The notes under the pieces were generated by a model. That model was not told the DNA's origin, ran no database searches, and worked only from the letters and a program-made list of their open reading frames with translations. From Podarcis filfolensis (taxonomy: Eukaryota), in the NCBI GenBank assembly GCA_964270895.1, contig OZ185436.1: 64,000 nt of DNA; one strand, 5' to 3'. A program made the position numbers and the translations under genes. Positions 7,303 through 62,803 of the stretch are shown piece after piece. The stretch's first letter is position 1. The number at the start of each line of letters is the position of its first letter.

Positions 7303-7495
7303 ATTGTCTGACAGTAATTATACACATGGGGTTGAGCTCATCAGAAAGAGAAATTGGAAAACTGGATAATCTTAAGTAAAAAACTAGGTAATATGAATCA
7401 AGTAATTAGATAGAACACTAGTGTTTATCTGCTGATGTATAAAAGAACAAGTACCAAAGATCATTAGTTTGTCAACAAGTATTTTCAGTACAGTA

Positions 7496-7720
7496 CAGTG
7501 GTACCTCGGGTTACATACGCTTCAGGTTACAGACACTTCAGGTTACAGATTCCACTAACCCAGAAATAGTACCTCGGGTTAAGAACTTTGCTTCAGGATG
7601 GGAACAGAAATCGTGCAGCGGCTGCAGCGGGAGACCCCATTATAGCTAAAGTGGTGCTTTAGGTTAAGAACAGTTTCAGGTTAACAACAGACCTCCAGAA
7701 CTTAACCCGAGGTTCCACTG
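7496..7720. mobile_element. Tc1/mariner-type MITE, copy 1
   Basis: TA|CAGTGGTACCTCGGG ... CCCGAGGTTCCACTG|TA. Confidence 0.85.
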
Positions 7721-8185
7721 TATAGGATTGTGGTAGGGTGTTTAATCATATTGTACTATTGGGTAGTCTGTTAGGGTCCTGGCTTCTATCAAAGTATGAC
7801 TAATTAGGATCATTGAGGATGTTGTAACCTTTTGTGGTCAAATTAAGGCTTTTCTGCAACTTGAGGCCCAGAAAGTTAGGGTTCCCAGAAGATTGCTGCT
7901 TCACCTAACCCAGCTATTTATTCTGGGTAAAGTGCATGCTTGGAGCTCCCCCATCTGGAATTGTTTCCTCATTTATTTCATTGGAGATTGCTGTCCTAAA
8001 AATCATTCTCTTATACAGTACGTGGAACATAAGATCTGGTTGCAAGTTTATTCCTAGGTACACTGGCTGCATTGGTTTTTTAAAGTATTGGATGAACCAT
8101 TGTTAATGGAGTTCCCTTCATGAAATCTTGTATCTTCTCGAAAGAAAAAAATCTCTGTCAGCTATGATTTCATGATTTTAATGTA

Positions 8186-8400
8186 CAGTGGTACCTTGGG
8201 TTACAAATGCTTCGGGTTACAAACTCCGCTAACCCGGAAGTAGTACCTCGGGTTGAGAACTTTTGCGCCAGGATGAGAACGCAAATCGCGCGCCGGCAGT
8301 GGGAGGCCCCATTAGCAAAAGCGCGCCTCTAGTTAAGAATGGTTTCGGGTTAAGAACGGACCTCCGGAACAAATTAAGTTCGTAACCTGAGGTACCACTG
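8186..8400. mobile_element. Tc1/mariner-type MITE, copy 2
   Basis: TA|CAGTGGTACCTTGGG ... CCTGAGGTACCACTG|TA. Confidence 0.85.
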
Positions 8401-9337
8401 TATTGCTTATATTAATTGTGCTGCAGTAGTATGGTTGACCAGGGTTTCTATTGTGGTGATCTAAGCACAAGATAGAAACAACCATACAAATGAGCCAGCT
8501 GCAAGTGGAACTCTTCTTTGCATGTAGAGGAGTTTTCTTTGTGGATTTGGTTAAGAGAAACGTATTGCATTGCATTTTAGCACACTGATGAATATCTAAG
8601 ATGGGGACTACCACCCATTAAATTAACACTTCCTGTTTTAGACTATGCATCAAAAATCACTGATCTGGTGCTTGCCAACACCACCCACCCACCCACCCAC
8701 CCACCCACATACACACCACACCCACATATCCTAGGCATGGATTCTTGTGGATCCATCTTTGATATGTACGTAGTATGACAGCAAAACCACTTACAAATCA
8801 TATAATACTTCACTATACACAGAGGTGTAGTTTTGAGGGGATCCTTTAAAATTAAGAATTCACAAGGGTCTGTATTGTGCCATGGAAGGTCTGGAAAGCA
8901 CCAGCTCTATTAAAAAAATGGTTTAGCCAATGGAAACAGGATCTGTGATTTGGCAGTGAACATTTGGAGGGGAAAAAAAGGCAATTTAAAGAGGATCTGT
9001 TGCTAGATCCAGCTTGTCTGTGTATTCTGTCTGGCACTCATTTTCTCTTTTATCTGACCTCCTGACTGCTCCATTTTCTCCTCTCTTGCAATCTCTGTTA
9101 TGTCCCCTTCTTCTACTCCACTGCTCCACTTTCTATTAAACTGCCAGTCTGAGCCATGTGTGCCTGACACCTGTGGACCCAGATCTAAGAATTCTGAAGT
9201 TGGGTCACTTAATTCAGGAGAACTTGCTTCCAGGAATGTGTGTCTCAAATGCATTACCTGGCACTTATATTTGTAAAGAAAGGTGAGCAGGTGGAATGCT
9301 TTAAAATAAATGAACAAGTATTATCTCTGCAAATTAA

Positions 9338-41839: not shown

Positions 41840-42423
41840 GGAGAACAGTGGTATTAGCTACCCCTCCCAGTTTGTTGTCATTTGCAAATTTGACGAGCAT
41901 CCCCTCTATTCCTTCATCCAAGTCATTTATAAAGATGTTGAACATCAACAAGCCCAGGACAGAAGTGCAGCACCTCACTTGTCACCTTTTCCCAGAATGA
42001 TGAGGAACCATGAGGGAGAACTCTTTGGGTTCAGTTATTCAACCAGCTACAAATCCACCTAACAGCTACCTCATCCAACCCACATCTTACCGGCTTCCCC
42101 GCAAGAATATGGGGGACTTAGTCAAAAGCCTTGCTGAAATCAAGATACGCTGTGTCCACAGCATTCCCCTTATTCACCAAGCTTGTAACTCCATAAAAAA
42201 AAGAAATAACTTGCTTTTGAGAAATCCATGCTGGGTCTTAGAAAAGGATGCGGGGATTACTAAGTGCTCACAGACTGACTGTTAAATTATCTGTTCTAGG
42301 ACATTCCTGGTATCATCAAGTTGACTGGTTGGTAGTTACCTGGGCCTACTTTTTCCACTTTTTGAAGATGGGGGGGGGGCAACATTTGTCCACCTCTAGT
42401 CCACAGGGACCTCACCTGTTCTG
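41840..42423 (-). mobile_element. CR1 LINE reverse transcriptase fragment
   Basis: Minus-strand translation VLGLLMFNIFINDLDEGIEGMLVKFANDNKLGGVANT matches the CR1 RT (F)ADD region, with degenerate upstream ORF2 sequence. Confidence 0.85.
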
Positions 42424-43223
42424 TCTGTAGCTAGCTGTTCCCTTACCATCTCTTCTCCTATCCAAAGCACTGCTTGTGCAGTTGGTCTTTCTCCCACTCT
42501 GTGTGCCCCCTAACTTTGTTCTAGGAGTTCCCCTCAATCCTGTGGAGCAGATTTGGGGAAAGTGTGCATGGGGGCGGGGGCTTGTATTTCACAAGTGGAA
42601 ATGCTTGTGCTGATGAGATGCTTTAGCCTGATAGCACCCAAAGATACAGTTCAGAAGTATAAGACTCTCTGAGTTAGGATTCTGCCTGCCCTAGAAATCT
42701 AGTTTATGGCAAAATAGTCCCTTCTTGGATAACAGGTTAGGAATTTGCTACTGTACTGCATTTTAAAGACCTTTTGCTTTCTGCATCTTTGCAGAGAACT
42801 AGGTGATTGGGAAACTACAACAGTAACAACCACAAAAGCTAATGGCAAGAGGAAGGGGCTAAATTTGATGTGTCAAAATGCAACTAGGAATGAGCTGAAT
42901 AGTATTCCTTTTCTCTGATGTCAGAGGAGAGCAGACAGGAGAGACAATTGCAGATAGCAGCAAAGCTAGAAGAAATAGCGGTTAGGTCTCATATGAAAAT
43001 GAAACACAGATTAAAGTTTATAAGCACAGATAGCAACCCAGTCTACAGATGAAATGGAGGTAGTATTAGCATAGATATGGATTACCCCAGTCACATTAAG
43101 CCATAGATGCAAATCCGAAGGAAGATTATAGCTATTGTTCAGCTGCCTCAACTAATCCCCTACCAACATAAACAAAGCGTTGGTTACCAGATAATGTACT
43201 GGAGTTTGCACCAGTGGATTTAC

Positions 43224-43272
43224 CTGAGTTGGAGTCTTGCTGTTTTTCTCTTGTTCGTCTTTTCTTTTTCCC
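43224..43272 (-). CDS. TCF7: TCF7 basic tail / NLS exon (49 nt)
   Basis: tctag|GGG...TCA G|gtaaat; GKKKRRTREKQQDSNS. Confidence 0.97.
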
Positions 43273-43842
43273 CTAGAATCAAAGAGAGAGAAAAGGGAGG
43301 GAGGGAGAACACAAATCATAAGTGAACAAATACAGGCATATCTTTCCAGAGGGAATAAGGGGGTTGTGGCCAAGGCTCCTACTTTCATCCCTTCCAAACT
43401 GCCTGCTTCATTTCTGAACACCATGGATTCTTGCTAATCTAGACCCCTTGTATGGTGTCCAATTGGCAATTGCAGATAGCACCCTCCCCCTAGTGGTCAA
43501 AACATGCTCTACAGGCAGTCAGGGACATGTTGTTTAAAAGGTACATCATTTTTACACAAATGCTTCTTCACACCGAAAGAAAACCACAAATGAGATGGAT
43601 CCACCTATTGCTTTAAACTCTTAATTCAGAAGTAACCCCTCATTAACTCATAGTGCAGCATTCTGCCCAGCCGGCTGAGAGTGGCACCAGCTTGGTAGAG
43701 CTTTTGACAGTCTGCCAATTCCAGACCTACATCTTGCAAGCAACAGTTTAGCTGATTTGGGGGAGGAGCCCCTGGGAACTATAGATGTAAAAGAAGGAAA
43801 AGCTACGATTACAGTTAAAGCAAGAAATCTCTCTCTGTGTGT

Positions 43843-43844
<2 letters not shown>

Positions 43845-43888
<44 letters not shown>
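43845..43888. repeat. (CA)n microsatellite
   Basis: Uninterrupted CA run. Confidence 0.95.
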
Positions 43889-43892
<4 letters not shown>

Positions 43893-46009
43893 CCCAACAT
43901 CAGTTAGTATTGGATGTTACTTGGGAACTCCCCTCCCCCCGGAGATTGGTTAGCTATTTATTATGGCTGAAATTAACATATGCTAAAGGCAGATTGCAAA
44001 TCTAAAAAGAGGTCAAAACAGAGAGCATGGGGAGGCCAGGGACCCTCCCCATAAATGGCCTCATACTGGTAGTTTATTCATTAAATTTTTATGCCATTCC
44101 TTTACAGTACACAAAAACAAAAAATCCCAAACTGCACTCTTGCTCATTGTCTCAGGTATTATGGTCCCTGACCATAGCTGGAACAAATTGGTATGAATCC
44201 AGCCCCCTTTTCATGCCTACCTGCACATAGATTGTCTCTGGCTTACATTTTGAAATACCGGAAAGACTGCCACTCTTCCCCACAGCTAGGATATATTGAG
44301 CTCATAGATGAGGATTGTGCCACAGTCTTTCCTGTGTCCCAAACAGAAAAAAGTGTGCTGCCACCATGGTGCAATGACCTGGCTTAAGGAGCGAACCTAA
44401 CTTTCTTTATGCACACACACCAGCCATCTGAACAAAGACCAGCTGCATTCTGTGCATATGTGAAGGAATGTATTTCCAGCAAAAGGTTGCTGTGCATGGG
44501 TGGAATAAAGTGGACAGTGATCTCATTTTCAGCAGGCTTGCAGCCTACACAAGTTACTTTATCAATGAAAAAGTTCTCTTTTAAAAATGTCTTTTAAGCG
44601 GGGGGAGAAATTGGACCGTATTTCAGGAACAGCACATGGAACATCATAGTTAAAAATGAGCTTTGGTCACCAAAGCAACTTGCCTTGAATGAAGAATAAT
44701 GTCAAAGTAACTATTACAAATAAAAGTGAGATCAACCTAAGGTCTGTTTTTCGTTATTCACATCTTTCTTGCACCAGCATTTGTGATGTCTTCATGCTAG
44801 CCTCAGATTTTTCTTGGGCACAGAAACTGCACTCACTAGCAGCTTGAAAAGTGCATAGTATTTGCAAGCTTGGGCAGCCTATTTCACTCAGAAGGAAATC
44901 CCTCAAGAGGACACTCGCTGTTGTAAACATGTTGAGGACTGCAGCTTTTTTGTTTTCACTTCCAGAGACGAGATTGCAAACATGGAGCACAACAAAGCCT
45001 TTTCCATTTTAAGTTCAAACAGTGTTTAAACATGTTTGTCATTAGCGAGGCACAAAAACCGCTTCACTGATGAAAGCAGGCAAAATCAAACCAGATTGTC
45101 TTTCCTTACACTCCTCTCCATATAGTATTGATTTTGCTTGCATTGGGAGGCCTACATTATTACGCAGCTGCCCAACACTACAATTAAAACATAATGCTGG
45201 TGGCAGTTACTGTCTTACAAGCTCTGTGCCAGCGTTGGCTGTAAGATGGAAACATGTTTTAAATCCATGTGTATGGTTTTGGGAAACTGTCTTGAGTTGC
45301 CACATACAGTTTTTGGACTGCCTCTCCAATGCTGAAAATCCATTCTAACATTTTAAGACAGCTAGTGGTGGTATCCTTATGGACATTTCCCATTGGAATG
45401 GCCGTGGGGTTTTGCATATCTGAATGCTTCCCTACATCAAATGTTGCAGCACATGGAAAGCTAGCATGACAAGGAACAAGGTTCTAGCCAAGTGTTCTCT
45501 CTGATGTACGAGCTTTCTACTTGCATTTGATTTTTGATGTGCTCCTCCACTGGCCTTGAGTTCTAAAGACGGCACGGCACATTATGCTCTAACCTGAAAG
45601 CCCAACTGCTGCTGCTTCTGTGCAAACTGGGCTAGAGGGCACCATTTGCAATAGAGGAGCTTTGGGCAGGAGAAGAGCACTTCACCCTTCCCTTCCTTCA
45701 GCTGCCCCTTAGCTGCATCTGCTTTCTCCCATTTCCAGGCTCAGGACACACGTTTGCAGCAGAAACACTGGACGGGGTAAAAGCAGCTTGCTGAGTTGCA
45801 GAGGAAAACAGACTAGTGGAAAGTTAAAACACCTTCCTCCTTCCAGAGCTGCTCTGTTGCAAATTGCGCCCCTCATTCTTTGCACAGGAGAAACGGAAGA
45901 TAAAAAGCCAAGTCAGAGCTTGATGTCCTGCACCAAATAACAGGCATAAGGAGGCCTTGACTGTTGGCTGCAGTCAAGGAAGACGGCGCATCGAGCTGTT
46001 TCTCCTGTG

Positions 46010-46176
46010 GGAACATAGGAAGCTGCCTTATACAGTACTGAATCAGACTGCACTGACTTGGCAGCTCTGCAAGATTTAAGACAGGTGGTCTCTCCCAGCC
46101 CTACCTAGAGTTGCCAGGGATTGAATCTGGGACAGCCTGCATTCAAAGAAGGTGCTCTGCCACTGAGCCACGATCC
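46010..46176 (-). mobile_element. tRNA-derived SINE (Squam3-like)
   Basis: Minus head ggatcgtggctcagtggcagagcacc...caggttcaatccctggc; tail ...aaggcagcttcctatgttcc. Confidence 0.7.
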
Positions 46177-47538
46177 TTCCCCTAAGAAAAGCTCAGGTCC
46201 TCCTGCCACCAGTCACCAAGAAGAACCAAAAGCCAGATTTCTAGCTGCTTTACCAACTGCTTCCACCAGAAAGCATCAACTACCAGTAGGCGAGAGGGGA
46301 ACCAGTACCAGACTCTCCCATTAGCCTTTTGGATTAATACAACAATTGCTCTGTTTACTATTGCTCTCCCTGGGGGTAGGGTGGGCTACAAAACATGCAT
46401 GACTCTGACAGCCTGAATAAGTTACTAGGATGGGGGAAGGCAGAAGTCCTATGGATAGACTTCTGGAGAGTCCCTTCAGGCTTCCTCTTTTTCAGTTTCG
46501 CTGAGGCAAAAAGCCAAGGTGGCTTATCCATGTACACCCCGCGTGGGAATGGAATTCAGTTAAGGAAGGGGGTTAGAATGCATGGGCTGTCACCTTAGTG
46601 CACAAGCTGACTAGCAAAAGCCACAGGTAAGACAAAATCCTGGCATGGACAGTAGTATCTTAAGAGAGGCAATATGTATGTGCAAGACACACAAACCTTC
46701 ACAACCCATGATCATTACCAGATGCTGGGGACAAGCAAAGGGATGGGCACCAACTTCATGCCTTGCTTGTGGGTTTCCTGGAGGGCTCTGCCTGGCCACT
46801 GCTGGAAACTAAGATGCTGGACCAGATGGACCTTTGTTGGTTGGATCCAGAAAGAGCAACCCCATTGTTATTAAAAAATATATTCATGCAATGACACCTC
46901 AAATCAGTAGAGTCTGCATTATTTCCTTGTGGGATGCAAACAATCCATCCTTTGTCTACTTTGCTGCATCCAATTCAAATTTAAATAAAATAATGTCCGC
47001 AGCATTTGCAGCTCAGAAGGCTGATTGTGTTCAAAATGAAATTGCCACTCCAAAAAAAATAAATAAATCTTGATGGTCACCTTTGACCACGTGCAAAGCC
47101 AATACGTTCCAGGTCATGGGTGCATTGTTTTTACTGCTTTTAAAGGAAAGCCACACTGTCCAACCTGCAAACCCTCAATTTATTTGTTCTGTTCTGTGCA
47201 AGCGTTTTCCTGAAACCAATGCTCCCAAGGGCAATGGTTTGTTTTTGAAGCTGATCAGATATTAACGACCTATTTGCCTAAAAAAAGGAAAGTGCTGTCA
47301 TGAAGCGTCCACTCGCTTCACTGATGCACAAGCTCGCCACAAGCACACATAGCCCACTGATTGTTTCCCTTCAACTCAACAAATTCCACAGCCAATGAGC
47401 AATTCTATGGCCATGGAAAAGCTCAGGGCTCCTGGAATTCTGCAGCCAACGCTGGGTTAGGTGGATGCATGAGTGGCAGATGGTTACAGACTCTCACTGC
47501 CGTAATGCAGAAGGACATTCGCTGCAGAATTCGCTTAC

Positions 47539-47631
47539 CCTTGCCGCGGAAACCGGCCCCGAGGTGCTGCTGAATTCCAGGGGCCCTGAGTTAAACTTTG
47601 TGTGATCACGGGACGAAGAGCCTGAAGAAGA
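47539..47631 (-). CDS. Candidate alternative TCF7 cassette exon (93 nt, phase 0-0; second acceptor gives 83 nt)
   Basis: Branch-like ttaac, polypyrimidine tract and cag acceptor; donor AGG|gtaagc; open frame SSSGSSSRDHTKFNSGPLEFSSTSGPVSAAR; locally CpG-retaining. No transcript evidence. Confidence 0.5.
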
Positions 47632-47890
47632 CTGAAGAGCAAGGGGGAAAGCGTTAAAAGAGCAGCTGCGGGGAGCACTGAAACAATGCACCAAATACGT
47701 ACACAAAGCACATCAGGAAGCAGACAGAAAAACAACCTAGCAGAGAGCCTATACAGAGAACAGCACCCCAGCCCAGCTAATTCAAACAAGCCATTTGTGC
47801 AGCTGAAAAGGAACCTTGGAAACTATAAGCACCTCGAGTCACAAAATGGCAGATGAATTTTGAAGGCCTTGGAGGGAAGAAGCAGACATA

Positions 47891-48114
47891 CAGTGGTACC
47901 TCGGGTTACATACGCTTCAAGTTACAGACTCCGCTAACCCAGAAATATTACCTCGGGTTAAGAACTTTGCTTCAGGATAAGAACAGAAATCGTGCTCCGG
48001 TGGCGCAGCGGCAGCAGGAGGCCCCATTAGCTAAAGTGGTGTTTCAGGTTAAGTAGTTTCAGGTTAAGAACGGACCTCCGGAACGAATTAAGTTCTTAAC
48101 CTGAGGTACCACTG
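47891..48114. mobile_element. Tc1/mariner-type MITE, copy 5 (same subfamily as copy 1)
   Basis: TA|CAGTGGTACCTCGGGTTACATACGCTTCA ... CCTGAGGTACCACTG|TA. Confidence 0.85.
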
Positions 48115-51100
48115 TACATTTATTTTCTTTTTTTAACCATTGGGTATTTACTATTTTGGGTCACATCTGATGTAAAAAATAGTAACAGTACTGTGGGTTT
48201 ACAGACAGAATAGTTGTAGCCAGCTAGCAGGTCACCTCTGCTTAGTCTTCACACACCATGAAGCACCTCTTGAAAATCCTGCAGATACTTAGGAGGGGCC
48301 AAAACACACACCAAACCTCAAGTGGGCCACATCCCACGGTGCACTTCTGGGAAGGGCTTTTGATCCAGCAGAAGCTTTTGCTAATGGAAAAGTAGAATTT
48401 TTGCTGATTCCCCCTGCAGCCTCCTCAATGTCACTCCCTGCCCCCATTCTAGAAGGAGGTGAAGGAGGCATCAACACACTAAGGGCTCATCCACACTCCC
48501 ACTTCTCCCATGCCCAGAAAGCACAGGTTAGAGCAGTTTCCCCCTTGCCCCACTCCTTTTCTAGGGGAAACCTGCTCTTTAAATTGGATTGAGTGTGGCC
48601 ATGCACAGCTGCAGTTCATGTACAGGATTTCCCTGTGGATTGTGAATCCATGTTGATTCCCCCACCCTCTGCTGTGCTTGGCACATTTTCCATCAGGTTG
48701 TTTTTATCTCCAGAAGACTTGGAAAGTCTTCTGCTGACCAACCCTTTTAGTGAACATCACTTTTTAATAACATATAGAAAGAGTACTGGGAAATGATGCC
48801 CTTATATTTGTTCTTAATAAAACTACATTTTGGGACTTTAATATTTCTTTACTTAAAAACACACACAAAAACAAAACAAAACACAAAGCAGCAGCCTAAC
48901 AGAAATGTCTTCAAATAAGATGCGTCAATGGAGAGCTATTAGGAAAGAGTATTAGAAAAGTAGCCATAGCAACACAAGAGCAAGAGACCATGCATTAATT
49001 AAGGAAGCCTTTTTGCAAAAGACTTAAGACATTTAGGCTGGTGTTTTCAGTGAGCGGAATCCAACGTTGCATGAACAGATGTCTGCTAATGCCGCTGAAC
49101 TTTGTCTTCCTCTCTTCCCCCCTGCAGTCCCCTATGAACCCTCAAAATCTGGCTGGAACATCCCCATGGGTTACAGAACCAATTTGAGGGTGTGTAGAGG
49201 GCTGCAGGGGGAAGGAAATGAAGGTGAAGTTTCGTTGCACATGCAGAAGTCTGTTCAATTTGCACATGGACAGAGTTAGATGCAACCCCGTTATTTCACC
49301 CCTATGTCCAGGGGTGTCAACTTGAATAAAATACATGAGAAGAACAGGTAAGTGCCTTTGGCCGATTAATATTCTACAGCCTTTAAAAAGTGCCTGTGGG
49401 AAGTGGGGGTTAATATTTTGCTGTTTGTTTTACTTATTTACTTGCTTTTTATCCTGTATTTTATTCTGTGAACTGCCCTGAGATCTTACGATGAAAGGCG
49501 GTATATAATAAAATCAATCAATCAATCACATGATGCGGTGCACACACGCTACTTGAATGGCAATGTCCATCAACTTTGGGGCAAATAGTTGGCTCCTTTG
49601 CACGTATCTGTTGTTTTCCTCAGCAATTATTAAAGAAACGCCACTCAGTGCTTTCATTGGTTCAGTCACTGAATATGTGTCATCAAGGATTGTTAGAAAG
49701 ATGTTGGAAAAAGAAAATTAGGTGGTTTTGGCAGAAATGATATAAAGGATTAAGTAAAAATGAACTGATGAAATTGATGAAAGAGAGAGCGCAAAATTAC
49801 AATATATTAAAATAAATTATTAAGGTTAAAAAAAAGGCTGGAAGGATTTGCTGAAAGGAAAAATTTTGAACTAGAATACAAAAATGGGAGGTGTGAGGAG
49901 GTCAAGGAAATAAGTAAAAGAAGAAAGTTATGTAAAAAAAAAAAGAATATGTGTCATCCTTTGCTTTCTCATGAGTTGCTTCACAAGCTTCGTGAACAAA
50001 GCTGGCTTGGGAGTCATGGCTGCTGGTGGGGTTGCTGTTTTAGACCTGCAAACGTTTAAATACAACTCCTTGTACTCTACGTAAAGGTAGAAAAGCTCCT
50101 AAGTGTGGGAGTGAATTCATTTCCTGCCTGACAAGTCATATGATGGCAAGCTGACCTAAATTCTTCCTTCTCCTCCTCCTCCCTTCAGGGATAGAGCTTA
50201 ACAGTCAGTGTGGGCAGGGTGGCAGAGACATTCCCAAAGCAGCTGCTTCCTGGCTTCCAGCATAAGCACTTTTGGGCCTGGGCCTAGTCTACTCCTAAGC
50301 CTTCCCATTGACTGTTCATTTGACAGGGGAGGGAAACATGCAGTGCCCAGAAGTCAGGCAGTCACTTTCACGAACTGATTTCCTTATATTAAGCCAGCCC
50401 ACATCACTGGTCTTGTTGCTCTGAGGCAGAACACTCAGTCCTTCGAGGTTAAATACTGTAACTCGGGGTCCCTCAACCTTGTTATGGCTGTGGATTCTCC
50501 AATATATGTTTGAGAAATTGCCAGGGGTGCCATTGCAAAACGGGCATTCGCTGATGTTTTGCCGCTGCAACAAAGCAGCTCTCCAAAGCCACAGAAGATA
50601 AAGTGGCAAATCTCAGCAACAAAGCAACTTGCTCAAGAAACCTGAGTACAAGGTGGCAATCCTATGCATGCATACAGGGGAGTAAATTCCATTGAATTTT
50701 GTCCCCTTTGCCCCACATTTCACTCTGTAGTCTTTCCCAACTCTGCTAGCTGAGAAGCTTCAACTGAACATATCTAGAGTTGGACCTGAAAGTTCTCCCA
50801 TGCAAAAATTCTTGCATGTGGCCACTTGACCTATTGGCCCTGCCAGATATCCTTTTAATTGCACATTCATGTTGGGGTGGCCATATGCAAACGTCTGCAA
50901 AAGTTCTGGGGGAGTAATATTATGTTGGAAGCCACACAGAGTAGCTCGGGCAACCCAGTCAGATGGATGGGGTATAAAAAATTAACAACAACAGCAGCAG
51001 TAATGATGATGCTTCATTTTCAATCAGTGCATATCCTGTAACTTCCTGCTGAAATCAAATAACTTTCCATAGCATGAATATTCTAGGTTTCTTTTTCTTA

Positions 51101-52090
51101 TCCCACTTTTGCTGCAGTGTATACGGTCCCTTCCAGACAGCAATAATGGGATGGAATTGCAGAACAAGGAAAGCATAATACATCTACTGTAATCAACACA
51201 TAGAATAATATACCCGAAAGATAACACCAGTCTAGAGGATCTCTTTGATCACCTCTCCTCTTATCCCTGGGATGAGGATTTGGGATCCCAAGCAATACAC
51301 CACTACTTCACGGGCATTTTAAGGTGAACACTTAAAGGGTAATATGTTGGCGAAACTAGATGATACAAGGTAGATGTGTAAACGGTCTCTCAAAAATGAA
51401 AAGCAAACAGGTGAAGCTGAGCAGAGGGCCATCTATTACCTGCAAACAGGCTCCCTCCAGTGGCAAAAAAATAAAAACAACAGAGAATGGGGCCAGGTTG
51501 TTGCCCAACGCTTACTCTCTGCCAGTTCCCAGAGCAGGCTATTTATAAATTAATCTAAATAGGGAATGGTGAAAAAGTTGAAAGGAAACATCTTAGAAGA
51601 AAACCATCTGGCTAAAACACTTGAGGAAACGATATGCAAAATCCTCATTTTACATTTAGCTAGATGATTCCAGGCTAAGCTAGTTGCATATCTGCATGGA
51701 GGAAAAGATTTGAATTCAGAAATTCTGGGGGACCCTGAGCAGATCTCTGGATGATTTGCAATCGCTGGAGCAAGGATTTCTGACTCTCAATTATTTAACA
51801 GCAACCTGACTTTTGCTAAATCCGGCTGCTGAAGTAAAGGAAGCTAACCGTGTGGGTGGACTTCTGCGTAAAAGGGAATGTGAACCTGGTTCAGTTCTGG
51901 CACTGAAAACAAATTCCTAGGCTCAGAAAGTGCTCAGTACCCTGTTCTTTAAGGCTAACTATATGTTTCTTGCACAGTAGCCACCAAGCACCAGAGATCT
52001 TCCTACTCTTGCTCTAGGCTCACATGCTGCGAAACTACCACCCATGTTGGCATGCACCTGATAGGAAGAGAATGATGCACAGGAGCCAAA

Positions 52091-52254
52091 GGGCCATAGC
52101 TCCGTGGTAGAGCATCTGCTTGCATGCAGGTCTCTGGTTTGATTCCCAGCACCTCCAGGTAGACCTTGGAGAGACCCCTCCTAGCCTGTTGGTGTAGGCA
52201 ATACTGAGCAAGATGGACCAGTGGTCCGACTCGGAATAAGACAGCTGCCTATGT
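52091..52254 (+). mobile_element. tRNA-derived SINE (Squam3-like)
   Basis: gggccatagctccgtggtagagcatctgc...ggtttgattcccagc (A/B boxes); tail ...aagacagctgcctatgt. Older pieces at about 6906-6960, 11800-11982 and 60480-60600. Confidence 0.75.
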
Positions 52255-52444
52255 AAATTTGGTGACATGCGCTTGTGCAGGAAGTTGGGATGTAGAGCTA
52301 CCTGACAATGGAGCACAAACTGCGTTTGCGGGGTGCTGAGTCTACAGGGAAGATGCATGCAGACAGCCCTGCCCAGCCAACTACAGGCTTTTAAACACTG
52401 CAGCTGCACTCTGGGGTGGAAAAGCAGCTCACAGAGTTGGCACA

Positions 52445-52595
52445 TAATAATAATAATATGATTTATTTATACCCCGTCCATCTGGCTAGGCCTCCTCAGC
52501 CACTCTGGGCAGCTCCCAACAGAATATTATTATTAGTAATAATAAAAAGTGGTAAAACATCAAACATTAAAAACTTCCCTAAATGTATACAGGGC
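52445..52595 (-). mobile_element. LINE (L2-type) 3' end fragment
   Basis: ttatttataccccgtccatctggct...cagccactctgggc; the same motif recurs at about 12490-12606, 40288-40365 and 60050-60092. Confidence 0.6.
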
Positions 52596-52899
52596 TCATT
52601 GATGGGCACATGCCCCATAATTGCATGTTCATGTGCATTGACAAGTTACGAGGAGGGTGTGGGAAGCCCTTTCTTAAAAAATTTAAAATTTCAACGCTGC
52701 CAACCAGGCATGCATCAACGAAAACAACTTGGATGAACCTCTTTTAATGAGATATAAGCTCTCACATATGGTGGTTTTTTTGGGGGGGTGGGACAGACAG
52801 GAAGTACAGTTGCAAACTGCAACTTCCTTTCCCAATTGTCTCTCAAATTTAAAGCAAAGAAGTGTTGGCCTGGCAGGACCACTAGAAACAGGTACAGAC

Positions 52900-53115
52900 A
52901 GAGTGCTGTAGTGGTTAGAGTGCTGAGTCTATGACCCGAGAGACCAGGGTTCAAATCTCTATCTTCTGCCACTAAACTCACTGGGTGTGAACTTAGGCCA
53001 GTGGCCAACTCCCAGCCCAAACTACCTCAAAGGGTTGTTGTGAGGGTAATATGGAAACGGAGAGCCATGTATACACCACTTTGAATTCCTTGGAGGAGAG
53101 GTGGGATACAAATTT
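52900..53115 (+). mobile_element. MIR-like tRNA-derived SINE, old
   Basis: gtagtggttagagtgctg...agggttcaaatct (A/B boxes) and core-like cctcaaagggttgttgtgaggg. Confidence 0.6.
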
Positions 53116-54407
53116 GATAAATGTATGATAGAATGAAGGCAAATCAATGAACTGTAGAGTTCAAAGAAGCTTGGATGATGCTGGGTTCACTCAGACAGCC
53201 TCCTAAACCCCCAAGATCTTTGGCACACATTTCAGAAAGAGAAGGGAACTATCAAATTTGAAGTATTTGCTTCAGTTCAGCTATCAGCCGACATTTGGGC
53301 AGTATTTGCCTTCTTTAAATCCTGGGCTTTTGTCACCTTCCTTGGATGGGATCAGAAGAGGCAATGGAAGCAAACAGGACCTAGCAATGTGAACCTGGGA
53401 AATGCAAAATGCAGAGTCAGCATGAGCCAAAAGCAAACGCGGAACATGATGTTGGGGCAAGCCGTGAACAAGATGGATTGAGCAATATTAATCTCTCGCC
53501 TGGTAAGTGTATGATCATGTCAAACAAAAGTTAAGTATGACATATCACCCAAGAGAGAATACATGTTTATTTGCATTGATATAATTAAGAGCTCTAAGAC
53601 AAATATGGGTGTGGTTATTATTATTAGCTGCGAGTCTCTTCTCTCTGTGCATTTTAATTTCTCTTGAGGGCCTTTTTTCTGATGACCATAAATCTAGTGC
53701 AAGCTCATATAAATTAAAAAGAAACCACTGCTTATTACCTCACAGCTTTCCTGCCTATTTCGCACTGTGAGCACCTGGAGACAGACAGTAGGAAAGTGGG
53801 TATTACCATGAACTTCTAAACAGGGAGTGCAAACCCTCAAACTAAAGTGTCTCCACAGTGTAAACAGATAAATTACTAGTTATGAAACAGACCCTTAATA
53901 TGCTAAGTTTCAATCAAACAAGAAACTGAATATATTGGAGTCACACCTCATTAGCAGTTGTTGCACTTTGATTCCTTTGGCCAGCTCCAGATGTTGGACA
54001 TTTGCCGGGGGCTCAAGCCCAACATGGAGGAGACCACTGCCCAGACAGTACTACCTTTCCCACTTTGCAAAGAGTATCCAAAAAGATCCGATGCAGCATT
54101 AAGAGAATTCTCAGTTTTTATGTGCTGCCTCTTCAGGGTTAAGGCGGCTTACTGATGGCTGCATGGCTCAGGGCCCTCATATCCTGAAACCAACACTATT
54201 TAATATGATGATAATAATAAAAACCATATTTTTCCACTACTATCTTGCCTACTACAATTTAAAGAAGGGCAAAAAGGGGAGGGGGAGAAAGAGATCAGAG
54301 ATTAAAAGTTTAGGAGAAATGTTTTTGGATGTTGTGTTTAGCTAGCAAGGAGGGAGGCATACAGAGCACAAGGGCCTCTGAGACCCATAGAAAGAGGGGA
54401 TGCAAAG

Positions 54408-54657
54408 AAGTAGAAGAAAATAAGAGTTTGGACTTGATATCCTGCCTTTCACTCCCCTTAAGGAGTCTCAAAGCGGCTAACATTCTCCTTTCCCTTCCTC
54501 CCCCACAACAAACACTCTGTGAGGTGAGTGGGGCTGAGAGACTTCAGAGAAGTGTGACTGGCCCAAGGTCACCCAGCAGCTGCATGTGGAGGAGCGGAGA
54601 CGCAAACCCGGTTCCCCAGATTACGAGTCTACCGCTCTAAGCACTACACCACACAGG
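54408..54657 (-). mobile_element. tRNA-derived SINE (Squam2-like), young
   Basis: Minus head gtgtggtgtagtgcttagagcggtagactcgtaatctggggaaccgggtttgcg; MIR-core-like body; (TTC)n-like tail. Confidence 0.75.
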
Positions 54658-56316
54658 CGCAGGAAAGATGGAGGCAGAAGCACTAACACAGGGTTGGGGA
54701 AGCTGAGGCCCTCTGGATATGGTTGGACTCCCAACTCCCATCTGCCACCAGGCATTCTTATTTCTTCCCTTCCAATATATATTTTTATTCTGTTATTTAT
54801 TTATTTATTAAATTTATATACTGCCCTTCATCCAAATATCACAGGGCAGTTTACATATATAATCACTTTAGCCACCCAAACTAACAGGGAGCAAACACAG
54901 ATACCCACAACCACTCTCTATGTAGATATTAATATCAGGTATACGTAACTTTATCTGGATTGCACTCTGCTACATCTGGGCTAAAAAGAGCTGTTGAATA
55001 ACAGCTACAGCATGACAATGTTCAATCTGCTGGAAATATTGTGATGTATTATAGTTCATTAAATTAACCCCCTAAACCCAGTAGTTTCAGAAGAGTTTAC
55101 TGCAGCGACCCTCCAGCAGTGACAGAACTACATTTTGGGGGCCCTGAACCTTGAACTGTCATGGGGGCCCCTTTGCCACCAGCAACAAGGTCTGAGTAAG
55201 TCCTGTTATCGTCTTCAATGGGATTGTTCCGTGACAGATCACCACACCTTTATAACACTTGTGCTACCGACTCTCTAACTTTGGGATTGTTGAAATACTG
55301 ACAATAAAATAACAATTTGAGTCACGCCACTCAAATTGGGTCTACTAGACCCAAAGATCAATGTGGACTCAAGTTGCTTCTGGGCTCCCTCCAGGATTAG
55401 GGCCCTGGAGCCTAAGCTTCATTAGTTTCATAGTAGATCCACTCCTGCCCTCCAGTTAAATTTGTATCTCTGTTGGTTCCTTTGAACACCTGGGTGCTAG
55501 TCCGGGAAACAGTGTGGTGACCTCCTTGAGATCGGTAGGGGTTTTCCCCAACTCTTTTTAATCTAACTGAAGTGCCTAGATCTTGGTGTTTGTGTACATC
55601 AAAAGCAGTTTGCCACGGTGTGTGGGAAGCTGATGTTAAGGTAGGGGAGAAAAGCCAGCAGCCCCACCAAACATTCAGAAGCCTAAAAGTGAAAACCTCT
55701 CAGCATTGTTGGCTGCCTTGCGTCTAATGTCAACCTGACCATCTATCTATATATATGTCCCTGTGATCTAACTCTTTGGGAATTGCTTCTCTGAATTTGC
55801 ACACTATCTGTGAGAAAAATTGCTGTAAACCATTATCTGCAAAAGAAGTCCTCTTCAGGGATTTGACCTGGAGCCCTGTGGGCTAAAGTGGGTGTGGTGG
55901 GAGTGGCACATGGCTTCTCCCCCCCCCTCCCAAATCTGACCTTCACTTGCATACTGTGAAAGTCTGAAGGTTTCTTTTAAAAAACAACAACAGCAACACA
56001 CGAGTGCATTTGGGTGCATAAGCTTACAAGCTTCTCTGATACTGGAAATCCTGAGAAGGCATTTGCCCAAGCACACTTGCAAAGCTCCTTTCAGACCTCC
56101 ATCCCAAACAAGTGAAGGTCAGGCATGGAGGGGCTGTGTGTGACGCCCATGCTCCCAGTTCCCCATCCCACTTTTGCGATGCTCGTGCCCCCTTCCCACT
56201 TCAGCCTCTCCCATGCCCAGGCTGAATGTCTGGAAAGGGACACAGTTTGAAAGGCAACATCAAAACTTCATGGACATATGATTCTCACGAGGCCACCAGA
56301 GACCCAGAGTACTCAC

Positions 56317-56424
56317 GTAGTTATCTCTTGCAGACCAGCCGGGGTAGAGCTGCATGTGGAGCTGCCTTTCCTTGCGGGCCAGTTCATAGTACTTGGCTTG
56401 TTCCTCCCGTGACAGCGCGTGCCA
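56317..56424 (-). CDS. TCF7: TCF7 HMG-box exon 2 (108 nt)
   Basis: ttcag|TGG...TAC|gtgagt; [36 protein letters not shown]. Confidence 0.99.
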
Positions 56425-58585
56425 CTGAAACAGAAACCACAGAAAGCCGTGAGACACCAAGAGACACCACCCCTCTGATCAGAAAAGAGCAAATGCTAAG
56501 AGTGGATACCAGACATCAGGTTTGGGGAACCGTTGACCCTGCAGATGTTGCTGAACTGCACCTCCCATCAGCTCCAATGGCTAGGGATGATGGGAGGTGT
56601 GGCTAGCAGCACCTGGAGGGCCATATGGAAAACAGTTTCCACATATGGAAACAGTGCTGAGGCAGCTCACAACCACTTCTGAGAGGACCAGCAATACCAC
56701 CCTGAATCAGAAAACAGAAAGTTTCTGGAATTTTGGAAGGCAAGGGAATAATTTAATGAAGTTTCCATTGGTATCAATGGGAAATCGTTAATGTTTGTAC
56801 CCATACCAAGTGGTGGTGGTGATGGTAGTGGAGATTTTCAGGTGGGTTGCAGCTGGGGAGAGTAGATAAAGCTCTCCTCCCTATGCACTGCAGACAATTA
56901 CCTGCCCCACCCCCAGAACCTGTAATCAACTAAAGAAATGCTAGATGCTGAGGTGCCTGCTGCATATTAAGCAAAGACTTAGTTTGGTCCTTATACATCA
57001 TTACTCCAGTCACTGTAATGTAGTTGCACACTGCTCTCTGTTTTTATTCAAATAGACCGCTGTGTGCAGGGAGCAGGAAGCCTTTGCCATATAACCAGAA
57101 AGCAACAGTCTCTTATTTCTAGACATGAACGGTGAAGCATTTTGACTGCTCAAGTAAGACAAAACTGTTTTGGGAAAATGGAGAAGCCCACATTGGACTA
57201 AACAACCATTTATTTTCGTGGGTTTTCTCCTCCTTTGGCTTCTACAAAACAAACAAAAGTACAGGAAAAACTAGGTCTTTACTTACAAAATTTAAAATCA
57301 GAGTTATAATGTAGAGTTCTTGGGATTAAATTTAAAGTTGTGTGGCTCAGTGGTTTGTGCTCACAGAAACAAGGGAAAGTTGTATGCCAAGGTTAAGGGG
57401 GGGGGGAGAGGAATCCAGTAAATCCACTGATCATGAACTTGGGGAACCCAGAGTCAAATCCTTGCTCAACCATAGACTCACTGAGTGGTCCACTGGTAGG
57501 TCCCAAGGCCTCACTCAAAAGTTCCCCACTTACACAGTGAAAATCATTGGGACTTGTCTCACACAGTTTTGCAGACGCGTGCTTTGTGAAGTGAAAAGCA
57601 CTTTACATGTTAGAAGTGATCCAGAAACAATTGTGGAGTCTTAGCTGAAAACATATTGCTGCAGCTTAAATTTCCTGACAACATAGCAGCCTTGGAAAAC
57701 CCCAATAATAAAATAAATTATGCTCAGTGATGTGAGGAGTGGCATGCAGTCTGACACAGGTGGCAGCAGGCTGGCAAAAGACAATAAAACACAAAGCAAG
57801 GTGTTGAAGGCTTTCCTTGGCAGTTCCTACAGCAACGTACGGTTCCTTGAGACAATCTATGAAATTCATTATAGTGGATCTTGGAAGCCCACATAAATGC
57901 ACTCAGTGGAAGACATTTAGGCTATATAGGGAGGAGGTGGAGTAAAAGCACGGAGTCCTTGGCTCCCTAAGTTTCTGCTGACCCTTTCAGATTCTGCTGC
58001 AAGTCTGTAATACAGTATGCCAGGCCACTACAACTAAGAGAGTGGTTTCAAAACCATTAATGAGTATCCTAAAGAAAAGAAATACCCTGCATGGGCCACA
58101 ATCATCAGTCCCAGCTTCACTCGAGAGGACACCCACACCCACACACCCCATTGACCTCCTTGCTAAACATGGTTACCCTAATAGCAGCAAAGCAGCCTGT
58201 CCACAGTGCTGTGGGAACCTCCAGCTAATTCAGCTTGCAAATGGCCATTTGGAAATCTACACCACCAAGCATGAAAGGCCAGCCATGTTCCACCATCTTT
58301 ACCAACCCAGTGGAGTTGGGTCTGCATTTGCTCTTCAGGAGGCTGGATGAAGCCTGTGCTCAGATCCTGCTTGTAGGCTTCCCACAGACATCAGGTTGGG
58401 TGCTGTGAGAACAATATGGTGGACTAGATAGGCTTGATCTTCTAGTCAAGGTTCTCTTCATGTTCTTAAACCATGGATCCAAAAAGCCCACGGCCTCTGG
58501 AAGTACTGAAGATGCATTTGCTAGCGCATATCCATGACGCCTCCCTAGTCATCAGAACACCCCCACCTCCTTTTTGTGCTCTTAC

Positions 58586-58748
58586 CCGCCTTCCTAATAT
58601 CTGATTGATGGCTGCACTTTCTTTCAAGGTGCACTCAGCAATGACTGTCCCCCGCATCTCTTTCATATACAGCATGAAAGCGTTCAGAGGCTTCTTGATG
58701 GTAGGCTTCTTGGCTTCCTTCTCTCTCTTTGGTTCTGGTTGTGATTTC
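58586..58748 (-). CDS. TCF7: TCF7 HMG-box exon 1 (163 nt)
   Basis: caag|G AAA...CGG|gtaaga; [62 protein letters not shown] and VIAEC are TCF7-type. Confidence 0.98.
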
Positions 58749-61477: not shown

Positions 61478-62716
61478 CCCTGTCAGACCTTCTCAAGACA
61501 GACAAGGAAGATGGAAGTTGGCTTCAGATCCTTCTAATGAATTCTTGAACAACTCACAACCAGCATCTGGATTGGTAGTGCAGATCTGGAGGGACAATGG
61601 GAATTGTGTTCCCTTGTGTAGGCAGGTCTAAGTTTTTTAAAGTGTTGCATGGGGGGCACTGCAGCACACAGTCCTGCCACCAAAAAAGGAGCAGCCTGAC
61701 AAAAGCAAATATTTCGTTTGTATCATGGTACACTGATGCTTCTAGTTTACTACCATCCTCAGCCATTGTAAATTGCCATACATTTCCAGGTTACCAAAGC
61801 CAGCAATCTTAAGCCAAGGGAGGGCTCTTGTCAGGGGCCATACAAGGAATTAACTGAACAAGGAGGACATTGCCAGGCATCTGCCTTGCACTCAAGTAGT
61901 GCATGATGCATGGAGGAAAGCTGACAGTGGACTCAAGTAGTGGAGTGAGGTAGGAATGAGAACCTGACCTGATGGTTTGAATTTATCAGGTTCTCTGTCC
62001 CAAACAAGACCAATTTCTACTTTTGTTAGCTGAAGATGACCATTGCAGAGGTAGTAATAAGGGTGCCCATTATGTTCTGCAGTATTATGAAGTGACACCA
62101 CAAGGGGAGCCTTATGCTGGAGACAGACAACAGCGTTGTTGGTTCTTTTGAGAGCTGAAAGCAAAAAGGGACACCATTGCTTGCAATGTGTGTGCTCATC
62201 CTTCTTACCAGGCCTGGTAAATAACTTTTGCAAAGTTTTGCATTGTTGTTGTTTATTAAAAAAAAAATCTGGGGAGGAAGAACTGTTTAACCACAGGCAA
62301 CAATAGAACAAAAGAAATGTGCGCACACCATGAGAGGTGAAACCTTTCGTCAAAGCACTTACAGACTCTATTTTTTGTCTCCAGCCACATAAGGCTAAGA
62401 GACATACTGATGTTTGAGGCTGCAGTGGTGGTGCTCACACGAAGACGGACTTTACAGCATCTTCATGAGGGTTCTCTCTCTCCACCCCCTACTATTGTTG
62501 ACCAAAGCCAAAATTGTGTTACTCCTTTTTGAGAGCGTGCTAAGTTTGTGTGTTGTTTTAAAGGATTATTATTTTAAAAAGCCACCTGCCTAAAACAGGA
62601 GACTCCCTTCCCTGTTGCTGCCACCCAGAAGCCTCCCTAAGTGCTGCAAGCTTGAACGGCGTGGACTGCAAAAGAAGCAGAGTGATTTTGTCCTGACTTA
62701 GGCAGCTCATACTTAC

Positions 62717-62803
62717 CTAGAGAAAGAAGCCCCAGCAGTGAGCGCCGACGTATAGGGCTGTCTAAATCCACATGACTGGAAAGGACAGACAGGCTGGCTC
62801 TGC
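62717..62803 (-). CDS. TCF7: TCF7 context-dependent regulatory domain exon (87 nt, phase 2-2, cassette type)
   Basis: cccag|G CAG...TCT AG|gtaagt; QSQPVCPFQSCGFRQPYTSALTAGASFSR, similar to the QGQPVYP..GFRHPYP exon of TCF/LEF proteins. Confidence 0.9.

Follow-up and report, generated by a model that had tools for sequence, protein, structure and literature searches.

TCF/LEF proteins form the nuclear end-point of Wnt/beta-catenin signalling, and the HMG box and the basic tail next to it are regarded as a single unit for DNA binding, DNA bending and nuclear import. The locus studied here raises the question of whether the TCF7 gene of a lacertid lizard carries an optional exon that would part the two. 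We examined a stretch of 64,000 nucleotides of Podarcis filfolensis DNA (contig OZ185436.1), referred to below as the window. An earlier reading of its letters alone (the sequence-only reading) had proposed a 93-nt cassette exon on the minus strand at 47539..47631, inside the 13-kb intron that lies between the end of the HMG box at 56317 and the start of the basic tail at 43272.

The TCF7 parts found in the window were two HMG-box exons, a basic-tail exon, a CRARF exon and a last exon starting with RKKKCIRY. These exons, with the first HMG-box exon (near 58747-58577) among them, were 96-100% identical to the TCF7 proteins of Podarcis muralis, P. raffonei, P. lilfordi and Lacerta agilis, and the divergent C-terminal tail was 98% identical to that of Lacerta agilis TCF7. 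The Podarcis protein matched by the window exons gave a Pfam HMG_box match with E = 1e-20. The second half of the HMG box was encoded by a 108-nt, phase 0-0 exon with SARDNY at its C-terminal end (56317..56424, minus strand). The basic tail/NLS was encoded by a 49-nt exon beginning GKKKRRTREK (43224..43272, minus strand), and this tail, of the GKKKRR-x-REK type, was identical to that of sauropsid TCF7. Both exons matched TCF7 proteins, both flank the cassette and are constitutive, and they correspond to exons X and XI, respectively, in the numbering of PMC9303524. C-clamp exons of the E-tail type were also present in the window: the CRARF exon lay near 41611-41531, and the last exon (39170-38855) carried the second part of the C-clamp and the E tail.

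Residues 1-228 of the Podarcis protein had no match within the 64-kb window. The TCF7 gene of Podarcis muralis is 111 kb long, and our mapping places the 5' exons, including those for the N-terminal beta-catenin-binding part, beyond coordinate 64000. An exon matching residues 229-257 of P. muralis TCF7 X1 was found at 62716-62802 on the minus strand; in the published numbering this is exon VII, which is alternatively spliced, and Lacerta agilis X2 lacks it. A separate observation concerned the first HMG-box exon (~58577-58747), which reads MRGTVIAEC in lacertids and the teiid Salvator and MRAKVIAEC in all other listed vertebrates; the HMG box hardly varies otherwise, and the change, from Ala-Lys to Gly-Thr, falls in its helix 1.

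On the minus strand, the proposed exon was preceded by a pyrimidine tract and cag, and it held no stop codon across its 93 nt in the phase 0-0 frame dictated by the flanking exons. The 3' splice-site region (47632..47657, minus strand), delimited from the sequence and from cross-species conservation, consisted of a TTTTAAC branch motif, the pyrimidine tract and the AG, with the branch A of TTAAC at 47654, position -23 relative to the exon. The donor was AGG/gtaagc. Its 5' splice site, GTAAGC, occupied 47533..47538 (minus strand), with GTAAG invariant in four squamates and C or A as the sixth base among them, and a gene model of Crotalus horridus splices the same donor to the basic-tail exon. 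The splice sites, open frame and donor described by the sequence-only reading were all present where it had put them; its branch-like ttaac was there as well, although at 23 nt from the exon and not 22 nt. The reading had further remarked that CpGs were retained in the segment and in the intron just after it, and our counts agreed. The exon contained 6 CpGs in 93 nt (o/e 0.78) and the 250 nt 3' of the donor contained 7 (o/e 0.45), against an o/e of 0.23 for the whole 13-kb intron.

Splice sites were scored with rough weight matrices, and the scores are approximate. On this scale, the splice sites of the cassette outscored those of both flanking constitutive exons, and four acceptors and two donors in the 13-kb intron were at least as strong as the cassette's own. 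The cassette candidate was the sole open phase 0-0 pseudo-exon of 45-300 nt in the intron, and it remained so when the acceptor and donor thresholds were both lowered by 2 bits.

To place the segment among annotated proteins, protein representatives were searched with the last exon, which led to a partial Crotalus horridus model (P0003); a word search with P0003 then gave the named TCF7 proteins, and the residues after SARDNY were read in each. The 72-residue stop-to-stop frame around the exon, used in the same kind of search over a length range that leaves out full-length TCF7, gave no candidates. The exact peptide of the window, followed by GKKKRRTREK, was found in Podarcis muralis X1, X2, X5 and X6. 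The exact peptide was also found in P. raffonei X5 and X6, P. lilfordi, Lacerta agilis X2, X5 and X7, Sceloporus undulatus X1, X2 and X5, Pogona vitticeps X4 and X11, and Varanus komodoensis. Accessions with the cassette include XP_028573863.2 and XP_028573864.2 of Podarcis muralis and XP_032995979.1 of Lacerta agilis (X2). Close variants of the insert occurred in Anolis carolinensis (X6), A. sagrei, Salvator merianae, Tiliqua scincoides, five geckos and about 10 snakes. Others were found in turtles (Lepidochelys, Trachemys/Chrysemys, Mauremys, Chelonoidis with C. abingdonii X1, Dermochelys and Pelodiscus), in crocodilians (Crocodylus, Gavialis and both Alligator species, with A. mississippiensis X1), and in two amphibians, the caecilian Rhinatrema bivittatum (X1) and the axolotl Ambystoma mexicanum (X1). 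The exon measured 93 nt in most squamates and 90 nt in geckos, turtles, crocodilians and amphibians, with one common frame, and the GKKKRR basic-tail exon followed directly after it in all insert-bearing isoforms.

Predicted isoforms that include the exon stood beside isoforms that skip it in many of the insert-bearing species, among them Podarcis muralis (X1 versus X9), Sceloporus (X1 versus X3, with X6 also skipped), Heteronotia (X1 versus X3, with X9 also skipped), Rhinatrema (X1 versus X6) and Ambystoma (X1 versus X2). Because SARDNY is joined directly to GKKK in the same species, the segment is a cassette exon at the level of annotation. The proposal of a cassette between the TCF7 HMG box and basic tail was thereby borne out, the peptide sitting exactly at the SARDNY/GKKK junction of predicted isoforms with skipped forms alongside, and the remark that the exon might already be in predicted sauropsid isoforms proved right. 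The insert-bearing models numbered dozens and came from several sources, namely RefSeq XP_ models, UniProt entries, which we took to be Ensembl-derived, and submitter annotations. Since isoform predictions can be transferred between species by protein homology, their number overstates their independence.

Two submitter models, one from Crotalus horridus (P0003) and one from Phrynosoma platyrhinos (P0067), carried the cassette block in the wrong frame. In P0003, SARDNY was followed by an odd insert that overlapped the block in a different frame, and the model (L001 15029-15163, 23068-23196) had an extra exon and a frame-shifted NLS exon (EKRKDEQ…). Both models look like GenBank annotation errors.

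None of the several dozen bird isoforms listed carried the insert, and neither did any of those listed for frogs, lungfish and opossum. In an eagle (Morphnus, L004), the orthologous intron measures 3.9 kb, and neither the peptide nor the conserved DNA had a detectable homologue in it. Judged from annotation, the simplest reading of this distribution is that the exon was present in early tetrapods and was then lost, or is unannotated, in several lineages. Its retention would span what we take to be roughly the age of tetrapods.

Orthologous DNA from Phrynosoma (L002), Crotalus (L001) and Python (L005) was compared with that of the lacertid, and the eagle was compared besides. Only two blocks of the 13-kb intron aligned across species: one comprising the exon and its surroundings (47720-47281) and one at 45237-44918. 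In the four-way alignment, similarity was poor upstream and conservation started at the branch-point motif, with 17-20 of the last 20 nt before the exon identical, compared with 17-30 of 35-36 for positions -60 to -21. The AG acceptor and the GTAAG donor were conserved in Phrynosoma, Crotalus and Python, and the exon of the lacertid was identical to theirs at 82-89 of 93 positions. Its 14 variable columns, a small sample drawn from four squamates, fell on codon positions 1, 2 and 3 in the ratio 3/2/9, and the same small sample gave pairwise dN/dS values of 0-0.52. The lacertid and Phrynosoma exons differed at four positions, all of them synonymous. This substitution pattern fits protein-coding constraint in the frame given by the sequence-only reading, and the splice sites and the frame, which that reading had looked to other squamates to preserve, were both kept.

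An alternative reading frame for the block was considered and excluded, as the third-position bias fits only the phase 0-0 frame. The same bias argues against the frame used in the Crotalus horridus and Phrynosoma submitter models.

From sequence comparison and annotation we consider it very likely that 47539..47631 is a genuine, evolutionarily old and alternatively spliced TCF7 (TCF-1) cassette exon in this lacertid. The most serious alternative is that the conserved block is mainly a non-coding element, an enhancer of TCF7 or of a neighbour, which annotation pipelines turned into an exon and homology then spread. Three points speak for such an element: the first 170 nt of the downstream intron are as conserved as the exon or more so, a second and clearly non-coding conserved block lies 2.3 kb away, and the wrong-frame models of Crotalus horridus (P0003) and Phrynosoma (P0067) show that pipelines can mis-model the block. 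However, the conservation starts exactly at the branch point and takes in both splice sites, and the frame of 90 or 93 nt has stayed open from amphibians to lizards despite change in about half of the residues. In addition, the third-position bias and a dN/dS below about 0.5 fit this coding frame only, and the insert appears in several annotation sources, with RefSeq modelling both forms per species. We regard a mainly non-coding block as quite improbable.

Against Phrynosoma, Crotalus and Python, the second conserved block (44918-45237, minus strand) showed 76-79% identity. All three of its frames are interrupted by stops, and the block is hence non-coding. It contains CTTTGTT and TTTGAT motifs, which are of the kinds bound by TCF and SOX proteins, and on the strength of these motifs it is a candidate that may serve as an autoregulatory enhancer.

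Recent exonisation of a transposable element in lizards is another reading that the neighbourhood of the exon brings to mind. A 228-bp MITE-like element (47889-48116, with copies at 7494-7722 and 8184-8402) lies 257 nt upstream of the exon and has terminal inverted repeats of ~20 nt, TACAGTGGTACC…; it is CpG-rich and for that reason probably young. The CpG cluster at 47902-48084, upstream of the exon, is this MITE-like repeat and is separate from the exon. A tRNA-like sequence at 46106-46177 (minus strand) scored 39 bits in Rfam, above the gathering score, and is probably the head of a tRNA-derived SINE; apart from this match, a scan of 42000-58000 against Rfam returned sub-threshold miRNA noise only, with nothing in the exon block. 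The exon itself holds one arm of an inverted repeat, which together with the MITE-like element and the SINE head could speak for exonisation. Against this, the segment 47281-47700 had no second copy within the 64-kb window, so that the match to a repeat family that the sequence-only reading had allowed for did not appear there. The MITE was absent from the aligned orthologous regions of other squamates, where the alignment fades upstream of the branch point. The peptide is, moreover, common to turtles, crocodilians and amphibians, which makes the exon older than amniotes, and a recent origin from a transposon is highly improbable.

That the segment is a chance pseudo-exon, a set of decoy splice sites and an open frame never used by the spliceosome, is barely credible: decoy sites are plentiful in long introns and the candidate was picked by an earlier reader after scanning the sequence, but arithmetic from the site counts gives an expectation of only ~0.01 candidates of such quality per intron, the splice sites, frame and length are kept in four squamate genomes, conservation at the protein level reaches turtles, crocodilians and amphibians, and the substitutions cluster at third codon positions.

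With the segment read as a cassette exon, the intron that follows it becomes of interest for its regulation. The 170 nt after the donor (47369..47538, minus strand) are strongly conserved and form a candidate splicing-regulatory element, in which the lacertid matched Phrynosoma, Crotalus and Python at 159-163 of 170 positions (93.5-96%). Against the two snakes this stretch was more conserved than the exon, and against Phrynosoma about as conserved; weaker conservation continued past the element to about 47281. Because conservation of the downstream intron matches or exceeds that of the exon, a transcriptional enhancer, and not splicing, could account for part of the constraint.

A 25-nt inverted repeat links the exon to this element. 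The exon arm (47566..47590, minus strand), which covers the SGPLEFSS codons, pairs with an intron arm (47422..47446, minus strand) that is invariant in four squamates, giving 23 base pairs and a predicted stem that would leave the 5' splice site within a loop of ~120 nt. The stem was found in the single-sequence fold and in the four-species consensus fold. Its variation was limited to two one-sided C-to-U changes, with G-U pairs kept. No compensatory changes occurred across the four squamates and the fold of the whole region was not unusual (z = -1.2), and for these reasons we put the exon-intron stem forward as a hypothesis; splicing signals bound by proteins, or an enhancer, are just as plausible contents of the conserved intron. 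The consensus fold also paired the donor GG/GUAAG (47534-47540) with an invariant CUAACCC (47454-47460) about 80 nt downstream, which could provide a second possible masking of the 5' splice site.

On the other side of the exon, the 100 nt upstream of the acceptor (47632..47731, minus strand) contained six YGCY motifs, in keeping with the motifs that the earlier reading had seen by the acceptor. The mean for the intron was 1.3 per 100 nt, and no other 100-nt segment of it reached six. This YGCY-rich region was only partly conserved beyond the branch point. Inclusion of the exon would probably be controlled by the conserved 170-nt intron, by the YGCY-rich upstream region and possibly by the stem that loops out the 5' splice site.

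At the protein level, the Pfam HMG_box match in P. muralis X1 ended at residue 379, five residues before the cassette (385-415), and GKKK followed from residue 416. The insert has 31 residues here (30-31 across species) and is rich in Ser, Gly and Pro. An alignment of 25 orthologous segments showed the conserved cores SSGSS, SG(P)LE(F), T-x-GP and AAR, while about half of the residues change from amphibians to lizards with the frame still open. In an AlphaFold model of the segment from HMG box through insert and tail to C-clamp, the insert had no secondary structure and a pLDDT of 31-36; as the model mean was a pLDDT of 51, this lends only mild support to disorder, and the insert is probably disordered.

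The basic tail of LEF-1/TCF proteins adds DNA affinity and bending and serves as NLS. In the LEF-1-DNA structure, 2lef_A carries …SARDNYGKKKKRK as one contiguous stretch of box and tail. Inclusion of the exon would put a segment of 30-31 residues between …SARDNY and GKKKRR…, and, given the contiguity of box and tail in that complex, a flexible spacer should loosen the coupling of the minor-groove-binding box and the tail and would tune DNA affinity and bending. By analogy with LEF-1 this is the most likely mechanism. The linear NLS would stay intact, and the insert might add phosphorylation or docking sites. The sequence-only reading had suggested that the insert could act as a switch on DNA binding, bending or nuclear import. 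In our judgement, a measurable effect of the insert on DNA binding or bending is somewhat less likely than not. A bolder proposal is that the exon, the 170 nt and the stem together would act as an RNA-structure splice switch that sets how rigidly the HMG box is coupled to the basic tail, a tuning of a Wnt effector from early tetrapods that would have been kept in reptiles and some amphibians and discarded in birds, apparently in frogs and in at least one mammal; we think this unlikely.

The exon is already known as an annotation and is not new as a feature, since the identical peptide stands in the public isoform predictions of the closest relatives. Its function appears unstudied. The literature searched gave no functional or expression study of insert-bearing isoforms, and the part of it on TCF7 isoforms, HMG/NLS splicing and basic-tail exons gave no description of the insert. 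The 2022 survey of TCF/LEF gene structure (PMC9303524) has an Anolis TCF7 protein without the insert in its text and Appendix S1, and the legend of its Figure 3 names one exon, 'e', as specific to reptiles and another, 'b', as one of birds and reptiles. An optional exon that separates box and tail, long kept and yet absent from the listed bird isoforms, suggests an unstudied tuning of TCF7 output. The finding has little weight as a discovery; its value lies in drawing attention to an isoform that is uncharacterised and to the strongly conserved intronic element next to the exon, and this element, together with the possible stem, most deserves further work.

Compared with the predicted TCF7 isoforms of lacertids, the window showed the same SARDNY-insert-GKKK junction and an identical peptide, with nothing different, and the isoforms of Sceloporus, Pogona and Varanus likewise had the window's peptide. 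The isoforms of other squamates, turtles, crocodilians and amphibians shared the junction and the cores, with an insert of 30-31 residues. Known alternative splicing of TCF7 and TCF7L2 involves exon VII, the C-terminal exons XII-XIV (B, C, D and E tails) and the LVPQ/SxxSS variants (PMC9303524, PMC2847248). These optional exons are likewise frame-aware and alter DNA-binding or co-factor properties. However, the events so described sit before the HMG box or after the NLS, and none of them parts the box from the basic tail.

The LEF-1 HMG domain bound to DNA (PDB 2LEF) is near-identical up to …SARDNY (E = 1e-43) and its tail follows directly, whereas the cassette isoform separates the Tyr from the Gly-Lys run by 31 extra residues, and the geometry of 2LEF therefore cannot hold unchanged in that isoform. 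Predicted TCF7-family isoforms of other vertebrates also carry sequence at this position. The bowfin Amia ocellicauda (P0115), P0032 and P0033 have a 16-residue insert ending in KADW at the same junction. Sharks have an insert of ~21-28 residues beginning VVTP at the same SARDNY/GKKK junction, and frogs have four residues there, VSKE or VSNK, which look like the product of a 12-nt alternative donor and not of a separate exon. The bowfin, shark and frog inserts (P0120, P0141, P0143, P0148 and P0105 among them) are unrelated in sequence to the tetrapod cassette, and the SARDNY/GKKK intron seems to have hosted optional sequence more than once.
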